In this document: in pieces, positions 46,406 through 56,900 of the stretch
Position numbering within the stretch: position 1 is the first letter of the stretch
Layout: each line of letters begins with the position of its first letter
Origin: Cyanophora paradoxa CCMP329
Lineage: Eukaryota > Plantae > Glaucophyta
Length of the DNA: 64,000 nt
Direction of reading: 5' to 3'
Assembly (NCBI GenBank): GCA_004431415.1
Contig: QPMI01000102.1
Location: 1 to 64,000 of the forward strand
Translations under genes and position numbers: made by a program
The notes under the pieces: generated by a model
What the model was told of the DNA's origin: nothing
Seen by the model: the letters and a program-made list of their open reading frames with translations, nothing else
Databases searched by the model: none

Positions 46406-47113
46406 TCAGCCTTGAATTGCGGCTCCCGCGCTCTTCACATCAGCAGTTGCATTCCGCCCCTGAGGCTCATATGGTGTGAATGACTGACTCATGATCTGTG
46501 AGACAATGTAAAAGTATGCAGAATTGATCATCGTAGTCATTCATTGAATATGCTTAAGCCCTTCGATCATGATCACGAGTCACGATCCGATGATGCCGCC
46601 GGCCGGGCGAGGGGGCTCCGCCCATCATGGCATGGCCAGCCTCCCACCTCCGATCCCCGAGCCGCCGAGCGTCCGTACCCCCGCCCCGAAGGCCCCGTAC
46701 CCCTCTCCCTCCATCCCTACCCCCCGGGCCTCAAACTCCTCGAGCTCCCCCCCCACCCACCCACCCACCCACCCACCCCACTCCCCGAGCTCGAGGCCGC
46801 GGCCGCCCGCGCGCCCCGCGCCGAACCGCTACGTTTGTGTCATTGTAATTACCGCATTCGGAATGATTTCGTTACAATTCTTTGTTACTAAGTTAATCGA
46901 ATAGAAAGAGAGTTCACTGCTGCTGCTGCTGCCAGCTACTAGGCTAGCTATGCCGAGAAGGCCCGCACGCGGCTGCAACAGTGACTGGGTACCGGTATAT
47001 CGTCTTATTTAGATAAGCTATAAGCTTTCTAGAACCAAGCTAAAACCTTCCGTGCAAAACGAAGAACAGGAAGCTTTTAACTAGCAAGCTTTTTTTAGCG
47101 ATAGCTGGTGGGC

Positions 47114-49284
47114 TCACATAATGAGGCAGGCCGCGCTGCGCTTGGCGCCCCCCTTGGCCGGGGCTGGAGCCTTGCCGCCCGCGGGGGCCGGCGCCGGCCC
47201 CGGGGCCGGGGGCACCAAAGCAGCAGCGGCAGAGGACGCGGGCCGAAGGAAGGCGCGCAGGCCGGCGACGAGCTCGCCGGCCGCCGCGTCCACTGCCGCC
47301 GCCCCCTCCCCGCGCTGCATCGTCCAGTTCACCGACGCCAGCATCATCTGATGAGGATGAACATAAGTCAGGCCGGGCGAGAGCGCGGCAGGACGCAGAG
47401 GCGGGGGCGGGCGTGCCTCGTAGTCCACCGGCAGCTTGGCCGTCTTCGGGTCGACGAGCCACACTGCCAGCAGCCCGAGGGTGAGGTGGGGTACAAGGTG
47501 CGGGATAGGCGCGGCGGGCAGGCGCGCACCGGGGAACTTGGGGATGCGCAGCTTGTGGTGGGCGAACTGCATCTGCGGGGGAGGTCAGGCGCGCAGCCTG
47601 GCCCTGGCACGGCCCTATGCACCTCGTCGTCGCAGTTTTGGGAGCCGATGTATGCCGGCGAGAGGAAGCAGAGGAAGGTGCGGCAGCGCTGCATCGCCTC
47701 CTGCGCCCGCCGCGCGCCCCGCAGCTCAGCTCAAGGGGAGGCTGGTACAGGGTAAAAAAGGGGGGGGAGGCTGCGCGGGCGAGCGCACCCCGATCTTGGC
47801 CATCCATTTCTGGCCCGCCATGAGCTCGCGGTCGACCCTGGGCGGGTGCGTGAGCGGAGGGCGTGAACGGAGGGGCCCCGGAGGGGCGGGGGCGGGAGGG
47901 GGGGAGGGGGGGGAGGGGGAGAGGGGGCGGGGGGGAAGGCGGACCAGATCGCAAGGCCGGCGGCCTCGAGGGCGTCGCAGTAGCGCAGGACGAGCGCCGC
48001 GTCCACGTGGGCGTAGCTGCGCGGAGGCGTGAGCGCCGGCTCGGGCAACAAGCGACAGGTGCGGCACCTCACGAAGCAGTCCCAGGCCTTGCCGTCGGCC
48101 GCCGGCTGCAGCGGGGGCGGGTGCTGCGGGACCGCAGCTGCGGAACGGGCTCACGCTCAGAGGCCGGCGGCGGAGCGCTCGTTTGGACGGAAGGACGGAC
48201 CGGGGGCCGGCGGGGCCGAGGCGGCGGGGGCGGGCTGCGGCAGGAGGTGCTGCGGGGCTGCAGCTGCGGGGCCTGCAGTGGGCGCCGCCGCGGGGCGGGC
48301 TCGCGTCGGGAGGCCGGAGAAAGGCTTCAGGGGTGCGGGCGGGGGTACACGGACCGGGAGCTGGCTCGGCCAAGGCAGCGGCGGGGGCCGGGGCGGGCGG
48401 GGCGGCGGGGGCGGGCTGCGGCGGGGGGGTGAAATGCGGGGCGCGGGGGGCGGCGGGGGCGGGGCGGCGCGGCGCACCGCGGGGGAGGGGACGGAAAGGG
48501 AGCGGAGGTAGGACACGACGGCGGCGCACTGGGCTACAGGGTTGGCAATGTTCTCGTTGACGGCGCGGCGGACGGGCTCGGGCCACGAGTCCACGACTGG
48601 GTTGCCTTCCACGAACAGCCGCCCCAGGGCGGCGAGGTGGCCGATCTCCGGCGGCAGCGCCGTCAGCTGGTTCTTGTTCAGCCACAGGTCCTTCAGGGCG
48701 ACGAGACGGCCTATCTCCGGTGGCAGCGCCGTCAGCTGGTTGTCCTGCACGCCCAGCACCTCCAGTGCGCCGAGGCGGCCTATCTCCGACGGCAGCGCCG
48801 CCAGCTGGTTCTCGTGCAAGTACAGCTCCTTCAGGGCGCCGAGGCAGCCGATCTCCGGCGGCAGCGCCGCCAGCTGGTTGTTCGCCACGGTCAGCGACCG
48901 CAGGGCGGCGAGGCTGCCGATCTCCGGCGGCAGCGCCGTCAGCCGGTTGCTGGTCATGAACAGCTGATGCAGGGCGGCGAGGCGGCCGATCTCCGGCGGC
49001 AGCGCCGTCAGCTGGTTGTGGGCCACGCCCAGCTCTTTCAGGGCGGCGAGGCGGCCGATCTCCGGCGGCAGCGCCGTCAGCTCGTTGCAGCTTACGTCCA
49101 GCTTCTCCAGGTTCTTCAGCTTGGCGAGCTCGGCCCCCGGGATGCTCGTGAACTTGTTCTGGGAGAGGTCGAGCTCGCGGATGTTCTCGGGCCCGGCCGC
49201 CGCGATCTTCGCCGCCGGCCATTCCGCCCGCCCCTCCTTCTCCAGGAGCAGCCTCCCCGTCTCCGGCATCCATCCAGAGCCCAT
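47114..49284 (-). CDS. Soluble LRR + Pro-rich linker + TIR (TIR_2-type) protein
   Basis: Nine 23-aa LRRs in one exon. Spliced C-terminus AWDCFVS-YAHVDAALVLRYCDALEAAGLAIW-VDRELMAGQKWMAKI..EAMQRCRTFLCFLSPAYIGSQNCDDE-MQFA matches the TIR consensus. Confidence 0.85.
48600..49180 (-). repeat. 69-bp coding tandem repeat (LRR array)
   Basis: CCGATCTCCGGCGGCAGCGCCGTCAGC recurs on the + strand with 69-nt periodicity. Confidence 0.9.
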
Positions 49285-50998: not shown

Positions 50999-53900
50999 CT
51001 AGTCTGTTTCCTGAGAGAGGACGAGGGGGTAGTACGGGTACATGTGTACGTGGGCCGGAGGGGGCGGAGGGGGGAGGGGAAGGGGGTGTAGGGGGATGTA
51101 GACCGTGGGCGGCGGGGGCGGGGGCGGGGCGGGGGCCATGGCCAGAAGCGGGGGGTGGCTGCTGGTGCTGTAGAAGGCGGGGGCGGGCCGGGCCCGCGCG
51201 GCCACGAGAGCGGCCTGCGCCACGCCAACGTGGTGGTCGACGCCGTAGGCGCCGTAGAGGGCGGAGCCAGGCGCCAGCTGCGCCGGCGCCGGCGCCGCGA
51301 GCTCCACGCCGCCGCCGTCCTCCTCCTCCTCCGCCGCCCATTCCCCCGCCCACTCCTCTTCTTCCTCCTCCTCCTGCCACTCCTCCTCCTCCTCCTCCTC
51401 GTCGTACGGGGCCCGGGCGAGGACCGGCGGGGGCCCTCCCGCCCCCCCCTCCTCCTCCTCCTCCACGTGGACGTACTGCCCGACGAAGACCTGCAATGAT
51501 GCTCAGGCGACGGGCAGCTACGGCCGCCGGGGGGGGGGGAAGAGGCGGGGGGGAAGAGAAGAGAGACCTGCTGTACGCCGCGGGGCCGCTTGGCGGGCCG
51601 AAGGGAGGAGGAGGAGGAGCCGCTGGCGGCCTGGTGTACCCCTCCGGCGTCCCGCTCCCTCCGTCCCCGCGCTGCGGGAAAGCTTAGAAACGCGCAGGGC
51701 GGCGGCGGGAGAGGCGGGGGCGGGGGGCGGGGGCGGGTCTGGAGGAGACGCACGGGCGGGGGCGATGATGGTGAGGCCGCCGCCTCCTCCGCTCTGAATC
51801 GCGTTCATCCGGTTGCGAACGCCCCCGCGCTTGGTGCGGCGCTCTGGGAAGGTGGGGTACGGTAGTCAGGGGAGGCAGAGGTACAGTGGGAAAGACTGAC
51901 CCTTGCGCGGCTGGGGCTGGGGCGAAGGCGAAGGCAGAGCGGCGTCCGCCGGGGGCGAGGTCCGGCGGGGACAGCCGCGCAGGTGCTCCTGGTGGAGGCT
52001 CAGGAGGCCGCGGACGCGCACGGCGAGGCCGCCGGATCCGTCCGCGACGATCTCCACACAGTCGCCGAGCAGCCGCGGCAGCAGCGCGGCCATGTCGTCC
52101 GCCGACAGCGGCTCGCCGGGAGCCTTGCGCAGCCGCTCGCCGCCACAGAGGCGGCGCATCCACTGGAGCGCACGCGGGCGGTGCAGGTTCGTGTAGTTCC
52201 ACGCTCGGGCGACGTCTTCCAGAGAACTCGTCGCGCCGGGCCGCGCCGAGCCCGTCGCGTCCGTCAGGACGTCGTAGAGCCCCAGGGCGCCCCACTGCGC
52301 TTCGCTCATCTGCGAGCCGGCGGGCCCGTTGAGGCGGCGCCACTCCATCGCGGCGGCCAGGCCGGCCTCAAGCGCTGTGTTGAGGTCGCCTTGAACCGCG
52401 ACAGCGACGGGGCCAGGGCCCAACCGCGCCAAACCTGCTGCATCCAACGCCGCAGCCACATTGACGGCTCCATCGAAGAAGAGACGGAGGGACGTGCGCA
52501 GGAGGGGCAGGTTCGCGTTGCGCAGGGCGTAGACGATCGAAGCGCCGTCGATGGGCTCGACGAGCTCTTTGAACGCCGAGATCCGCACGCTGTTCTGCAG
52601 GGAGCTGAGTGCCCGCAGGAGCGCGTGGCCGATCTCCAGTACATCCCCGTCGACGCCGCTGCGGCTCGCCGGCGCCACTGCGCGTGCGCGCGCGAGCGTC
52701 AACGCCGGGCGCTACGAGAGATGGGGCATCGGGCAGAGATCGCACCCTGTGCCCGCAACGGCCCCGCCTCGACCTCGGCGCCATCGCTCCCTCCTGCTCG
52801 GGGCGCGCGTGAGAGCGCGCCGAAGGGGCGAGGGCGAGGCTCGGATCGCACCGGGGGCGGCGGCGGCGGCGGCGGCGGCGGCGGGGCCGAGGCCGCGCAG
52901 GTGCTCCTGGTTCAGGTCCAGGAGGCCGCGGATGCGCACGGCGGCGCCGTGGACGTCGTCGGGCACGATCTCCACGCAGCCGCCGAGCAGCCGCGGCAGC
53001 AGCGCGGCCATGTCGCCGGCCGAGCTAGGCTCGTCCGAGATGTTGCGCAGCCACTGAGAGGTGCGCGGCGAGCAACGTCGCATGCGGGTCCACGCGTAGA
53101 CAACGAAGCTGAGAGGACCCGTCGCGCCGGCCTTCAAGGAGCCCGTGGCGTCTGTCAAAGCGTCATAGAGCTCCAGGGCGAATCGCTGCCCGTCGCTCCG
53201 CTGTGAATTGGCGCCGTTCAGGCGGCGCCACTGCATCGCAGTCTGCAGACCGGCTGCAAACGACGCCTTCACATCGCCCTTGGCGCTGACCGAGACCGGG
53301 TCCGAGCCCGATCGCAACGCTGGCGCGCCACTCGCTGGGGCCACCCGCACCGCCGTGTTGAAGAACATGCGAAGCGACGTGCGCAGCAGGGGCAGGTTCG
53401 CCTTGCGGAGCGCCTCGTCGATGGTGCTGCTGCCGATGAGGCCGACGGTGTCCTTATAGACCGAGATCGACTCGGTCCTCCGGGGCGATCTAAGTCCCCG
53501 CAGAAGCGCGCTCCCGATCACCAAGATGTCCTTGTCGACTTCGATGCGGCATTTAACCGCGTCTTCGTCGCCGCTGCCGGGGCCGGGGCCGGGGCCTTCA
53601 ACAGTGTGTTCATCCGTGCCCTCGTAGTAGACCTCGCGGGGCTCTTGCTCCGCGGGATCCTCATCCACATCCTCGTCGAAATCGCCGTCCGCGACGAATT
53701 CGTCATCGACGTCGCCACCTGTACACGGGCGTGGAAAGTGAGCAGGAGTGGCGCAACTGCGACCAAATACCGCACCTGCTGCTGTAGATGGCCCCGCCTC
53801 GTACGCAGCGACCGCGGCCTCCCCCGGCTTGGCGCTGAAGAGACCCGTGATGCGAACCAAGACCGTGTTGTTCTCAGTCGTGTACACGGTCGCGCAGTGG

Positions 53901-56900
53901 GACAGGTGCGTGCGGATGAAATGCGTGGGCTGCTTGAAATCTGGGACCTTGAACCGGCGCTGCATGAATAACAGCGCGTTCTTGACGTTGTCCACGCGTC
54001 CCTCCGCCCCGGCCTTCACCGATCCGGTCGAGTCGATCACAGCGTCATAGAGATGGTAGGCGTCCGCCTGCGTCTGGTCGAGCTCGAGGTTCTTGCGTTG
54101 AAGGTTGTGCCCGTTGAGGTCTCGCCACTGCGACGCGAGCCGCAGGCCTTGCACCAGGGCTGCCTCCGCGTCGCCGACAATCGTCACGTCGATCGCTGTC
54201 GAGGGCGACCGGAGAGCGTGCATCCACAACGGGCCGGTTGGAGGTTGCACCGTCACAGCGTCAGGGAAGAACATCCGGATCGCCGTTCGAAGCCGCGGAA
54301 GCCCAGCATTGTCGAGCACATTGTCGACGGAGTCTTCTGTTCGGAAGTGCGTCTGGAACCGCGCCTTGAATTTTGAGATGCTTATGTGTCCTCGCTGTGC
54401 ACGTGGCAGTGCCCGAAGCATGGCCTGCCCGATGCGCCATATGTCGTCATACTTCACGTCCCGCGTCGGCCCGGGCAGCCCGTCGCCTCCATCCGTTCCC
54501 GTCCCGTCCACGTCGGCACCCGCCGCCGCGCCGCTTCCGCCCAGAAGCTCGTCCAGACCCTCCATCAACTCGCCCCCGTCCTCCGCGCCACCAGTTGCGC
54601 TCGCTGCCTCCTTGCGTGCGAGCGATGCCGGCTGTGCTGCGCTGTCACGTCCCATGTGCAGCGCCGCGACGTCTCCGGCGCCACTGTGCGCCGACTGCGT
54701 CTCCATGAAGTCTGCCGCGCAGGGCCGCTTGTCCCGTGCCCCTCCCTCCTCCCGTATCTCTCCGTCCTCCAGCTCAGGTTCGTCATACCCGCCAGAAAGC
54801 GGGTTGGGCATATGCCCTTCCAGGCCCAGCGTCGACGCCCCAGCCGTAGCGTGAAGCATTGTTAGTGTCGTGTGTGTCTGGTAAGTGGCCGAAGTGCCGC
54901 TTGCTACGTCAGCGGCGGCTGGTGCTCGCTTCAACTTGTGAAGCGATTGCGGCGGATCAACTGCGCCAAACTTGGCCTGCCGCTGTGCAAGCAACACCGA
55001 AGTTGTTGCTGCTGGCTGCACAATTGACGTTGCGGCTGCTGGTAATGTGGAGCTAGTGAGCACCGCTGCCTTGAGAATGGGCTGTGCTGGCGTCTCTTCG
55101 GCGTCGGTCCCGTCGCCGAAGTCGTTGTCGCAGTCATGCCCGGCGCCGCCGTCGGAGTCCGCTCCGCCGGACGCTACGCGCCAAGCTTTAACGGCCGCGG
55201 CGCCGATTCCCGCCTGCAGCTCGACCTTGCGCGTCCTCGCGTTGGCCCTGGCGCCGATGTGCTGCAGCGCCTTGAGGAGCGCCATCTCCGCGCGCTGCTC
55301 CGGCTGCCCGACCAGCGCGGCGCAGGCGCCGGCGAGGCTCTGCGGGCCGAACCACGCCTGCCACGCCTCCCGCAGCGCCTCCACCGACGCCACCCCGCGG
55401 GGCCCGCCGCCCGCCGCCTCCCGCAGCGCGCGCAGCACGGCCACCAGGCGGGGAGGAGCCACCGCTCGGCCTCCTGCTTGCTGCCGCCGGGCGGGAATCC
55501 GCTCTCGTCGCCCGCGACGGGCCCCGTGGTCGCCGGCTCCGCTGCCTCCGCCATCGCCACGTCGCCGGCGCCGCCCGCCGTCTGCACGAGCCGCGCCACG
55601 AGCCGCCCGCGCCAGACGCCGGCCGGGACCGCCCGCCACGCGCCCCGCTCCGGCAGGCCCGCCACCGCCGCCAGCGCGCCCGGCAGCGTCCGCGCGTCGC
55701 CGGCGCCCTCCGGCAGCAGCCTCCGCGCCTTGTCCGCGCCGGCGTGCCGCGCCCGCCACGCCCTCGCCACGTCCCGGAACGGGATCGTCGCCGGCCCGCC
55801 GCGCGCGGCGGCGAGCTCGCCCGCGATGGACTCGAGGTCGCGCTGCGCCTCTTCCACGGACGCATAGTGGCTCTTGGCGGGCGGCCGCGCGGCGGCCGGC
55901 GGCGTCGCGGCGGTTGAGGACCGTGCCGCCGCGCTCTGATCAACGCGGCGGGGGTGAGAGGAGGTGGGTGGAAATAAATGGGACGCGGCCGGCCGGGCCG
56001 ACGGTCCGGCCACGTCTGAGGCCGAACGGGGAGCGACGGGGTTCGCGGCTGCGGTGGTACGGGGAGGGGCGGCGGGGGCGGGCGCTGGCGTGGGCTCCGG
56101 CGGGTCCTCAAAATCGCTCTCCCCCAGATCGGGCCCGGCCGCGCCCGGGTCAACGTAGCCGGCACGCACGGCGCCCGCCCACGCGCGCGCCGCGGACGCC
56201 CGCAGCGAGCCCCGGGCCGGCCTCCACTGGCCGTTGGCGACGACTACGCCGCCCAGCAGCTTCTTGAGCACGAGGTGCGGCTGCCACGCCTTGGGCGCAG
56301 CGTTCGAGAACTCCCGCAGGGACGCCCGTGCCAAGACCTCGAAGGACTCGCCGCCCCAGGCCTCCCACGCCGCCGCAAGTCGCGCCAGCGGCACTCGCGG
56401 CCCGTCCGCCCGCCGGAGCTCCCGCAGAAGCGCCACCAAGCGCCGGACGAACGCCGCCCGGTCCGCCACGGGCCCGCGAGCGCCCGCGCCGTCCTCGCCG
56501 AAGCGAGCCTGGAGGCGGCCGCCCGCGTCGCCGGCGGGAACGAGGCCGCGCCCGAGCGCGGCCGCGACAGCGCCCCAGCGGCCCTCCGCCTCCGCCTTGG
56601 AGGCGGCCGGCAAGCGCTGCGCCACCAAGTCCACGGCCTCGCGGAGCGCGAAGGCCGCTTCGCCGTGCCGCCCCCGCAGCTCGGCGAGCACCGAATCCAC
56701 CGCCGCATCCCGTTCCGCCCGCGCGGCCGCCTCGTCGGCGCCGGCCGCAGCCTTCGCCTTGGCAGCAGCGGCAGCAGCAGCTTGAGCCCGTTGGGCGCTG
56801 GCGATGGGCGCGGAAGACGGCAAGGCGGATGCAGATAGCTGCAAATGATGCCGATATTGAGCGCTAGCGCTGGCGCCGACGTTTGGCGCGACGAGCGCCG

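Follow-up and report, generated by a model that had tools for sequence, protein, structure and literature searches.

An apparently intact LRR-TIR gene of Cyanophora paradoxa, ending in a candidate farnesylation signal, is one member of a large receptor family

The minus strand of the 64-kb window (the whole stretch of Cyanophora paradoxa DNA that was analyzed) carries what appears to be an intact protein-coding gene of eight exons and 558 codons, whose predicted product joins an LRR cassette to a TIR domain through a Pro/Ala-rich linker and ends in a CaaX box. The gene is one more member of a large Cyanophora receptor family and is not unique. The explanation that we favor, with a confidence somewhat above even, is that the locus encodes an intact soluble 558-residue LRR-linker-TIR-CaaX protein, which would work by the sensor-TIR mechanism proposed below.

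The gene runs from 49284 to 47114, with a start ATG at 49284 and a stop TGA at 47116-47114, so that the original prediction had placed it exactly (47114-49284, minus strand). Its exons total 1677 nt with the frame kept throughout, and the introns measure 50-107 nt each, six of them with GT-AG borders and one with GC-AG. An in-frame stop lies 20 codons 5' of the ATG, and an AT-rich stretch is found only 3' of the final TGA. Exon 1 ends at a donor GT at 48200, and exons 2-8, which encode the TIR domain, hold 14-26 full codons each, except for the last with 77. The exons and the parts of the predicted protein are as follows.

48201..49284, minus strand: exon 1 (1084 nt, 361 codons + 1 base), opening with the start codon and coding for both caps, the LRR array and the Pro/Ala linker
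48068..48137, minus strand: exon 2 (70 nt), the linker end and TIR strand beta-A
47945..48016, minus strand: exon 3 (72 nt), TIR helix alpha-A to strand beta-B; 20/23 residues identical to P0003
47789..47837, minus strand: exon 4 (49 nt), the BB loop with its conserved Gly; 15/16 residues identical to P0003
47623..47700, minus strand: exon 5 (78 nt), carrying helix alpha-B and strand beta-C together with the catalytic-type motif
47530..47572, minus strand: exon 6 (43 nt), the remainder of helix alpha-C, with GT-AG borders; 13/14 residues identical to P0003
47417..47463, minus strand: exon 7 (47 nt), the strand beta-D region, followed by the GC-AG intron (donor GC)
47114..47347, minus strand: exon 8 (234 nt), TIR helix alpha-E and an Ala/Pro tail that includes basic residues and ends with the CaaX box and stop
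49177..49284, minus strand: N-terminal LRR cap, residues 1-36, a beta hairpin and a helix (AlphaFold pLDDT 83-97)
48601..49182, minus strand: LRR array of nine strands, with seven near-identical 23-residue (69-nt) units and flanking repeats
48499..48600, minus strand: C-terminal LRR cap, residues 229-262, three helices
48201..48498, minus strand: Pro/Ala-rich linker, residues 263-361 (about 98 residues), predicted to be disordered
47117..47128, minus strand: CaaX box Cys-Leu-Ile-Met (CLIM) at the exact C terminus, a candidate farnesylation signal

Comparisons were run exon by exon against Cyanophora paralogues from the EukProt EP00741 models (P0003 is tig00000841_g4736.t1, P0075 is g4730 and P0006 is tig00000600_g2261), and P0003, whose TIR is 89% identical, served as the proxy for the TIR in the Pfam, PDB and AlphaFold analyses. 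None of the eight exons is interrupted by a stop or out of phase, and 11 of 11 conserved TIR columns are present. The N terminus encoded by exon 1 aligns from Met1 with P0002, P0003, P0020 and P0075. Exon 2, flanked by intron 1 (63 nt, GT-AG) and intron 2 (51 nt, GT-AG), is identical to P0003 and P0002 at 22 of 22 residues. Each of the small exons stands in the correct order relative to P0003 and P0006, with 134 of 151 residues identical to P0003 in total; exon 7 shares 14/15 residues with P0006 and 11/15 with P0003, and 31-33 of the first 35 residues of exon 8 are identical to P0003 and P0075. The exon 1-exon 2 junction and the expression of this copy we infer from the paralogue models.

A Pfam search of exon 1 returned LRR_8 (E 2.9e-40), and in the AlphaFold model of the exon 1 product residues 1-262 are well folded (pLDDT about 94-99), with nine beta strands at residues 37-39, 61-63 and onward to 222-224. 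The C-cap helices (residues 229-233, 236-244 and 249-262) were predicted with a pLDDT of 94-97. The linker, 41% Pro and 19% Ala, was modeled with low confidence (block-mean pLDDT of 49-75 over residues 263-361), and a Pfam search of it found no domain remnant. Tandem Repeats Finder resolved the array into 7.1 copies with a period of 69. Scaffold codons are identical between these units, synonymous sites included, whereas positions 2, 3, 5, 7 and 8 of the LxxLxLxxN motif, on the concave face, differ by 1.5-1.95 nt per codon pair and show an entropy of 1.8-2.8 bits. The concave-face positions of the LRR are hypervariable on a homogenized scaffold. Among the Foldseek matches listed (ranks 1-49), the nearest solved LRR folds were Leptospira LIC proteins, SHOC2 and Rsu1 (35-44% identity, rmsd of 1.4-3.3 Å), SHOC2 superposing on the cassette with an rmsd of 1.4 Å at 36% identity. 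SHOC2 and Rsu1 are cytosolic adaptors in small-GTPase or adhesion pathways. Within the best 120 LRR matches, the only proteins to match the N-cap are 17 from Cyanophora, at 56-85% identity, and the C-cap is 54-72% identical to 14 proteins, again from Cyanophora only, with no Roc-COR match.

Searched as single open reading frames, the TIR portion of the gene gave sub-threshold matches to Pfam TIR_2 (0.29 and 0.0038), in the correct order along the profile. A family profile was built on an alignment of 62 related TIRs (A1), from which the window gene was left out and in which identity goes down to 20%. This profile matched 3 of 1,498 six-frame fragments of the window, all in the LRR-TIR gene and in the correct order: exon 3 (E 1.5e-6, positions 11-35), exon 5 (3.5e-10, positions 51-81) and exon 8 (0.038, positions 102-132). 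Exon 5 corresponds to positions 49-76 of the Pfam TIR_2 profile. The proxy P0003 matched TIR_2 with an E of 1.7e-19 (70.9 bits, the cut-off being 28), and the AlphaFold model of its TIR (P0003:286-425) had a pLDDT of 94; in Foldseek this model matched TLR15, RUN1, TLR1, AbTir, TRR-2 and SARM1 with a probability of 1.0 and TM scores of 0.67-0.75. By way of this proxy, the domain is assigned to the TIR superfamily (TIR_2 PF13676 / TIR PF01582) with a predicted flavodoxin-like alpha/beta fold of strands beta-A to beta-E. The original claim of a single gene combining LRR, Pro-rich linker and a TIR that keeps its Glu agrees with the LRR_8 match, the family TIR profile and the exon order, and both the profile and the AlphaFold checks came out in its favor.

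The SQNCDDE motif stands at the end of exon 5, with the Glu codon at 47625-47623. This Glu, the counterpart of the one in helix alpha-C that points into the pocket of catalytic TIRs, is the sole invariant column (E77) across the 62 TIRs of A1, and the PDB alignments pair it with the Glu of TLR15 and of BtTir. The BB-loop Gly of exon 4 falls on A1 column G43, and conservation reaches at least 90% both for this Gly and for the box-1 residues; in SARM1 and plant TIRs the BB-loop Gly is required for active-site assembly. Four residues before the Glu the gene has Asn, which is also the A1 majority consensus (SxNCxDE). A Trp in this pocket is frequent in active TIRs and is not a strict criterion. 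In SARM1 the same position is held by a Trp (W71 in PMC7075850) that binds ligand. The same Glu is >90% conserved in TLR1, 2, 6 and 10, which were long held to be non-enzymatic (PMC7075850), so that the Glu by itself is no proof of catalysis. In every catalytic TIR tested this Glu is essential, and a 2026 preprint reports that TIRs of several unicellular eukaryotes are active NADases and that even some TLR TIRs make cADPR (10.64898/2026.04.20.719644). The best sequence matches among solved structures were TLR15/TLR2, Hydra TRR-2, TLR1/6 and MyD88 (E 2.4e-6 to 6e-3). Assignment to the SARM1 type was rejected, as the SARM1 TIR matched only with an E of 0.08-0.15 by sequence and by fold was no better than TLR, RUN1 or AbTir. 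An NAD-cleaving or signaling role for the LRR-TIR protein is plausible, and the earlier inference of a sensor coupled to a TIR enzyme remains reasonable given the Glu invariant in 62 TIRs and the hypervariable concave face on an identical scaffold.

The last four residues of the protein, CLIM, form a canonical CaaX box, and P0003 and P0006 both finish in CSVQ (Cys-Ser-Val-Gln) despite divergent tails, the CLIM following basic residues and the CSVQ an acidic stretch. A Cys at position -4 was found in 8 of 291 compared proteins. Within the same clade, three of six LRR-TIR copies have a CaaX end; the remaining models end sooner, perhaps as shortened predictions. A CaaX box has Cys at position -4, then two mostly aliphatic residues, and its last residue decides the prenyl type; a final Met or Gln favors farnesylation, and CaaX tails are typical among membrane signaling proteins. 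The CLIM end, together with CSVQ in P0003 and P0006, makes a farnesyl membrane tether likely, and the protein, which had at first been called cytosolic, is probably held at the membrane in this way and not free in the cytosol. N-Myristoylation was considered and set aside: the family begins Met-Gly, but residue 6 is Met here, off the usual consensus.

No TM helix was found in the LRR-TIR protein (Kyte-Doolittle 19-residue maximum of 1.17-1.30), nor a hydrophobic N terminus that could serve as a signal peptide, nor a match to the P-loop pattern GxxxxGK[ST], and the Pfam search of the gene gave no match to NB-ARC, Roc, COR or another NTPase. The original statement that TM helix, P-loop, NB-ARC and Roc-COR are missing holds on each of these counts. 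We rejected membership of the TLRs, the TM helix and signal peptide being absent, and of the NLR/STAND class (plant TNLs), NTPase and P-loop being absent. Pfam likewise found no SAM or ARM domain in this copy, which has LRR and TIR only.

Besides the gene described here, at least 13 EukProt models of Cyanophora paradoxa combine LRR and TIR, which does not support the earlier description of the architecture as minimal and, by implication, unusual. The gene itself is not in the EukProt models; its best match there shares 89% of the TIR residues and about 65% of those in the LRR. P0003, P0075 and P0006 share with it the N-cap, the 23-residue repeats, the C-cap, the Pro/Ala linker and the TIR clade, and the TIRs of the Cyanophora LRR-TIR models are 77-89% identical to its own exon by exon, whereas it differs from its paralogues in its concave-face residues and its longer linker. 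The same LRR cassette is fused also to SAM, RING and F-box domains, and the same TIR clade to myosin-LRR, beta-helix, SAM and RING-IBR domains. The clade further includes TIR-only proteins (P0122, P0127) and SAM-TIR proteins (P0124, P0128, P0139), and P0028, P0095 and P0132 are LRR-SAM-TIR sister genes. Paralogues of the LRR cassette lie in tandem clusters on single contigs, with adjacent gene numbers. A stringent tblastn of five paralogues against the 64-kb window turned up no further copies, and Pfam gave no match for ten long ORFs at 36-57 kb. Judged by these comparisons, the gene is a member of a lineage-specific expanded family in which an LRR cassette is coupled to alternative outputs, and there is evidence that the TIR clade is private to Cyanophora. 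The next-best organism-named TIRs outside Cyanophora were prokaryotic multi-TIR proteins (Parabeggiatoa, Methanobrevibacter, Sigynarchaeota) at 23-35% identity, and transfer from a prokaryote as the origin of the TIR was not adopted, these being too distant to call. Of the condition set originally for refutation, that the architecture prove common and already described in the lineage, half holds: it is common in the lineage, and no description of the family was found in the papers searched on Cyanophora TIR/LRR proteins, including the 2019 genome paper (PMC6704402).

In the mechanism that we propose, the farnesylated LRR-TIR protein would sit on the cytosolic face of a membrane, and a ligand would bind the hypervariable concave face of the LRR. 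Binding would free or cluster the TIR domains; the assembled TIRs, with their invariant Glu, could then cleave NAD+ and/or make an ADP-ribose-type signal, which might set off cell death or an immune-like response. That the protein is prenylated, senses a ligand, works as an enzyme and has a part in immunity is in each case inferred. The TIR might instead be a scaffold, as in TLR/MyD88, that recruits the TIR-only and SAM-TIR paralogues by TIR-TIR contacts with no NAD+ cleavage. The best solved sequence matches (TLR15/TLR2, TRR-2, TLR1/6, MyD88, with SARM1 only at 0.08-0.15) point in this direction, as do the Asn in place of the ligand-contacting Trp, the clade's own candidate adaptors (P0122 and P0127; P0124, P0128 and P0139) and the conservation of the Glu in TLR1/2/6/10 too (PMC7075850). 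However, that the single invariant residue of 62 TIRs is this Glu is hard to account for in a pure scaffold, some TLR TIRs make cADPR and several protist TIRs are active (10.64898/2026.04.20.719644), and the fold matches to RUN1, AbTir and SARM1 equal those to TLRs; we regard the scaffold as rather unlikely. Less probable still is a role outside immunity, in which a SHOC2/Rsu1-like LRR adaptor takes the TIR to a membrane partner in housekeeping signaling, NAD+ homeostasis or regulated cell death. The closeness of the cassette to SHOC2 (rmsd 1.4 Å, 36% identity) and Rsu1 among the matches listed, the CaaX tail typical of membrane signaling proteins and the joining of the same cassette to RING, F-box and SAM would all suit such an adaptor, but a hypervariable concave face on a homogenized scaffold, together with the many paralogues and the tandem clusters, is what recognition repertoires usually show and single-partner adaptors do not, and the invariant catalytic-type Glu speaks against a passive role.

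The locus could also fail to be one working gene, being split into separate LRR and TIR transcripts or being a silent or decaying paralogue. With intron 1 unspliced, the LRR reading frame closes at the TGA at 48159-48157; one donor is GC; and no identical protein, spliced or unspliced, was found among 5.8 billion clustered proteins. Against this, 8 of 8 exons are open and in phase with all 11 conserved TIR columns kept, the 22 residues of exon 2 are identical to a segment joined to the LRR in the RNA-seq-trained models P0002 and P0003, and the AT-rich stretch follows the final stop codon only. A search for an ATG between the stop at 48157 and TIR strand beta-A found none, so that a TIR-only transcript would be without a start, and we consider a broken or divided gene very improbable. 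Hardly any weight is left to the view, put forward originally from a likeness of the LRR cap to the segment preceding Roc, that the protein is ROCO-derived, having lost Roc-COR so that the LRR gates the TIR directly. Many LRR matches of the 23-residue class do carry Roc and COR (e.g. P0017, P0029, P0046, P0060 and P0100), and abbreviations in the legend of Figure 3 of the preprint 10.64898/2026.04.20.719644, on tested eukaryotic TIR architectures, include LRR, Roc and COR. Yet both caps match only Cyanophora proteins, with 0 Roc-COR matches at E <1e-3 among the best 120 LRR matches, no ROCO structure appears among the Foldseek matches listed (ranks 1-49), the linker has no Pfam remnant, and the cassette is common to SAM, RING and F-box fusions, which marks it as a mobile module and not a ROCO stump. 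Membership of the ROCO proteins themselves was rejected on the same caps and folds and on the absence of Roc and COR.

Bacteria, plants, animals and several protists use TIR domains as immune enzymes, and these are switched in different ways: by a membrane-spanning dimer in TLRs, by an NTPase-driven resistosome in plant TNLs and by release of ARM inhibition in SARM1. A large family in which a hypervariable cytosolic LRR is fused directly to a TIR, with a lipid anchor and no NTPase, would offer a simple natural system in which to ask whether membrane clustering suffices for TIR activation, and it would show an independent origin, outside plants and animals, of recognition repertoires made of LRR and TIR. 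To this the present copy contributes one apparently intact member, the CaaX observation and evidence of a Cyanophora-private TIR clade. More tentatively, and we offer it as a possibility only, the protein may be a unit of glaucophyte innate immunity that represents a third coupling of LRR to TIR beside TLRs and NLRs, in which, with neither TM helix nor NTPase, farnesylation would concentrate the receptors on a membrane, ligand clustering alone would assemble the TIR site and the clade, bearing Asn for the pocket Trp, would make a nucleotide signal of its own.

Among known systems, the closest LRR fold and repeat class are those of SHOC2, Rsu1 and the Leptospira LIC proteins, which, unlike the LRR-TIR protein, are without a TIR or other enzymatic output domain. 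Three metagenomic, probably bacterial proteins, P0032 and P0066 (LRR-TIR) and P0093 (TIR-LRR), fuse the same LRR class directly with TIR_2 and have no NTPase or TM helix, but the E<=1e-30 tier of the TIR search does not include their TIRs, which are of a different clade; 0 of 3 end in CaaX, and neither Cyanophora cap matched them. SARM1 (ARM-SAM-SAM-TIR) resembles the protein in its C-terminal TIR, the equivalent Glu and the BB-loop Gly, and in an N-terminal repeat domain that could autoinhibit the TIR, whereas the copy described here is without SAM and ARM, has replaced the ligand-contacting Trp (PMC7075850) and is only a weak sequence match. With the plant TNLs (RUN1, RPP1, ROQ1) it has in common an intracellular LRR sensor, a TIR with a catalytic-type Glu and large, clustered, variable families, and RUN1 ranks with the best fold matches (TM 0.73); it differs in having no NB-ARC/STAND NTPase for oligomerization, in its reversed domain order (LRR to TIR) and in the Asn at the Trp of WCxxE. 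The TLRs share the N-terminal LRR, the C-terminal TIR, the best solved-TIR sequence match (TLR15/TLR2, 2.4e-6) and membrane association, which in the LRR-TIR protein would come from the predicted lipid tail. Unlike them, the LRR-TIR protein is without signal peptide and TM helix, and its 23-residue SHOC2-type LRR would be cytosolic, on the same side of the membrane as the TIR.

The gene lies on the minus strand, where an ATG at 49284, with an in-frame stop 20 codons upstream, opens a reading frame of 375 codons that Pfam assigned to LRR (LRR_8, 2.9e-40). Three minus-strand frames downstream gave weak TIR_2 matches in the correct profile order, the frame matching profile positions 4-28 scoring 0.29 and the one matching 49-76 scoring 0.0038. 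Using tblastn, all parts of the paralogue TIRs were placed in the correct order on short minus-strand segments, and exon borders were then read off the sequence.

Exons of the gene, placed by paralogue tblastn with borders read from the sequence
49284-48201, minus strand, exon 1
48137-48068, minus strand, exon 2
48016-47945, minus strand, exon 3
47837-47789, minus strand, exon 4
47700-47623, minus strand, exon 5
47572-47530, minus strand, exon 6
47463-47417, minus strand, exon 7
47347-47114, minus strand, exon 8

The exons total 1677 nt (558 codons plus stop), and the seven introns (50-107 nt; six GT-AG and one GC-AG) have CAG at every acceptor, in a window of 57-76% G+C. Compared exon by exon, the TIR region shares 134/151 residues with P0003 (paralogue tig00000841_g4736.t1) and 133/151 with P0075 (g4730); exon 2 is identical to P0002 and P0003 at 22/22 residues. 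Between strand beta-A and the stop at 48159-48157, which ends the frame of exon 1, there is no ATG from which a separate TIR gene could start. The Cyanophora paralogue models, which are RNA-seq-trained BRAKER1/Augustus predictions (PMC6704402), join the matching exon 2 segment to their own LRR, and P0003 and P0006 (tig00000600_g2261) have an exon junction at the protein position of intron 7. A profile of 62 related TIRs (alignment A1, window gene excluded) was run against the whole window translated in six frames (1,498 fragments); matches were confined to this gene, in the correct order (exon 3, 1.5e-6; exon 5, 3.5e-10; exon 8, 0.038). The gene was searched exon by exon, with P0003 as proxy for the full-length protein; P0003 matched TIR_2 at 1.7e-19 (70.9 bits; cut-off 28). 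Pfam found no Roc, COR or NB-ARC domain in the gene, and it contains no P-loop motif or TM segment. Judged from sequence, then, the LRR-linker-TIR gene is real, with a conserved Glu and without an NTPase, as originally predicted.

Some features of the non-coding sequence are also apparent. Intron 2 (48017-48067, minus strand) has a length divisible by three (51 nt) and no stop codon; if retained, it would add 17 residues to the TIR, after strand beta-A and before helix alpha-A, without truncation. Within intron 3, the plus strand at 47880-47936 has a tract rich in purines and dominated by G; the coding strand is correspondingly C-rich, and the tract translates as a poly-Pro run that could mislead ORF-based reading. 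Intron 7 (47348-47416, minus strand) has a GC donor instead of GT. Directly past the stop codon, 46950-47113 is visibly AT-rich against the ~70% G+C of the window, consistent with a 3' UTR marking the true gene end.

AlphaFold modelled residues 1-262 of exon 1 with pLDDT 94-99 as an N-cap, nine strands and a three-helix C-cap, followed by a low-confidence linker (residues 263-361; 41% Pro, 19% Ala). The array holds seven near-identical 69-nt units. Positions 2, 3, 5, 7 and 8 of LxxLxLxxN, in and beside the modelled strands, vary strongly (entropy 1.8-2.8 bits; 1.5-1.95 nucleotide differences per codon pair). They sit on scaffold codons that are mostly identical, synonymous sites included, and position-specific in codon choice (GCG at 13 versus GCC at 23; CTC at 21 versus CTG at most Leu positions), a pattern indicating that units were recently duplicated or converted while the concave face diversified. 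Derivation from ROCO proteins, part of the original prediction, could not be demonstrated. Among the 120 best LRR matches, which do contain Roc-COR proteins, the caps matched 14-17 Cyanophora proteins only and none of the Roc-COR type; the closest solved folds among the matches listed were Leptospira LIC11098 and LIC10831, SHOC2 (rmsd 1.4 Å) and Rsu1, with no ROCO structure in ranks 1-49.

The proxy TIR (P0003, residues 286-425) was modelled with pLDDT 94 and matched solved TIRs of all kinds about equally (TM 0.67-0.75; TLR15, RUN1, TLR1, AbTir, Hydra TRR-2 and SARM1). By sequence, TLR15/TLR2 scored best (2.4e-6), then BtTir (3.6e-5), and SARM1 only 0.08-0.15; we therefore rejected a SARM1-type assignment for this copy, its fold match being no better than the others, and regard the predicted domain as a generic TIR. 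The Glu of the NCDDE motif (codon 47625-47623, the last of exon 5) corresponds to E77, the sole invariant column of A1; in TLR15 and BtTir the aligned residue is likewise Glu. The window exons also keep all ten columns that are nearly invariant, among them box 1, the Trp-x-Asp in strand beta-B, the Gly of the BB loop and a Ser seven residues before the Glu. Catalytic TIRs tested so far are all reported to require this Glu, and active TIRs are reported from a choanoflagellate, an amoebozoan, a cryptophyte, an oomycete and Chlamydomonas (preprint 10.64898/2026.04.20.719644). Two cautions apply to reading it as catalytic: the Glu occurs in >70% of all TIRs, TLR1/2/6/10 included (PMC7075850 for the latter), and the ligand-binding Trp of SARM1, four residues before the Glu (PMC7075850), is Asn here and in the A1 majority consensus (SxNCxDE).

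The original prediction of a cytosolic protein needs qualifying: the C-terminus is a CaaX box, Cys-Leu-Ile-Met, with three Lys and one Arg upstream of it in the last 23 residues, and hence a candidate membrane tether. P0003 and P0006 end in Cys-Ser-Val-Gln on tails otherwise unlike this one; Cys at position -4 occurs in only 8 of 291 proteins compared, and the remaining three LRR-TIR models of the TIR clade end before this point, perhaps because the predictions are truncated. A farnesyl tether is therefore likely, and the protein is probably lipid-anchored. Two unrelated double-TIR proteins (P0192 and P0209; ~33% identity) likewise have canonical CaaX boxes at their ends (Cys-Val-Ile-Leu and Cys-Val-Val-Met), so lipid-anchored TIR proteins may be more widespread.

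We consider most likely a membrane-tethered LRR sensor, held by the putative farnesyl anchor, that would switch on a putative Glu-dependent TIR activity. The invariant Glu fits such an enzyme, while its presence in TLR1/2/6/10 and the Asn in place of Trp leave room for the rival reading of the TIR as a scaffold; a further rival is that the protein is a non-immune adaptor.

Far from unique, the gene appears from its sequence to be one of many LRR-TIR genes in Cyanophora paradoxa, an assignment based on the fact that all its close relatives come from this species. With exon 1 as query, a word search retrieved numerous proteins whose names have the form tig..._g....t1, identified by exact look-up as EukProt EP00741, Cyanophora paradoxa; P0002, P0003, P0006, P0020 and P0075 have LRR then TIR as here. 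At least 13 EukProt models combine the two by Pfam, run or precomputed (P0001, P0002, P0003, P0005, P0006, P0009, P0020, P0028, P0075, P0092, P0095, P0130 and P0132), with at least two unrelated TIR types, and the LRR cassette is elsewhere fused to SAM (P0010), RING (P0040, P0114) or F-box (P0107). We found no description of LRR-TIR genes of Cyanophora in a collection of about 8.4 million papers and preprints, the genome paper (PMC6704402) included. No EukProt model matches the window copy at 100%; it is thus either missing from that annotation or from another assembly or strain. Paralogue tblastn found no further copy in the 64 kb, where this gene is solitary, and ten long flanking ORFs (36000-58000), including one of 1015 codons at 52712-55759, had no Pfam match at E<=0.001. 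By gene numbering, family members form tandem clusters on other contigs.

Clusters on other contigs
tig00000841: g4721, g4726, g4730, g4736 (LRR matches)
tig00000042: g15426, g15427, g15431, g15459 (LRR matches)
tig00000532: g1888, g1893 (LRR matches)
tig00020902: g15004, g15006, g15010 (TIR relatives)

When 1.84 billion representatives were searched exhaustively by HMMER with the TIR as query, 17 proteins reached E<=1e-30. Fourteen of these, with P0139 and P0153 just below, share 44-94% identity over a single or dominant stretch and are all from Cyanophora paradoxa; P0133, P0135 and P0136, which complete the 17, are multi-TIR proteins of 23-35% identity, as are those of the next tier, prokaryotic wherever the source record names an organism. 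Architectures in the Cyanophora clade are LRR-TIR, myosin-LRR-TIR, TIR-beta-helix, SAM-TIR, RING-SAM-TIR-IBR, LRR-SAM-TIR and TIR-only. Fusion of one TIR clade to a myosin motor and LRR (P0130), right-handed beta-helix/NosD repeats (P0125, P0126) and RING-SAM and IBR domains (P0129) suggests that domains have been shuffled extensively around a single type of TIR. Direct LRR-TIR fusion without an NTPase also occurs in metagenomic P0032 and P0066, although their TIRs are of other types, and the Cyanophora paradoxa sister genes P0028, P0095 and P0132, which share the LRR cassette as LRR-SAM-TIR, resemble SARM1 in their SAM-TIR output module.
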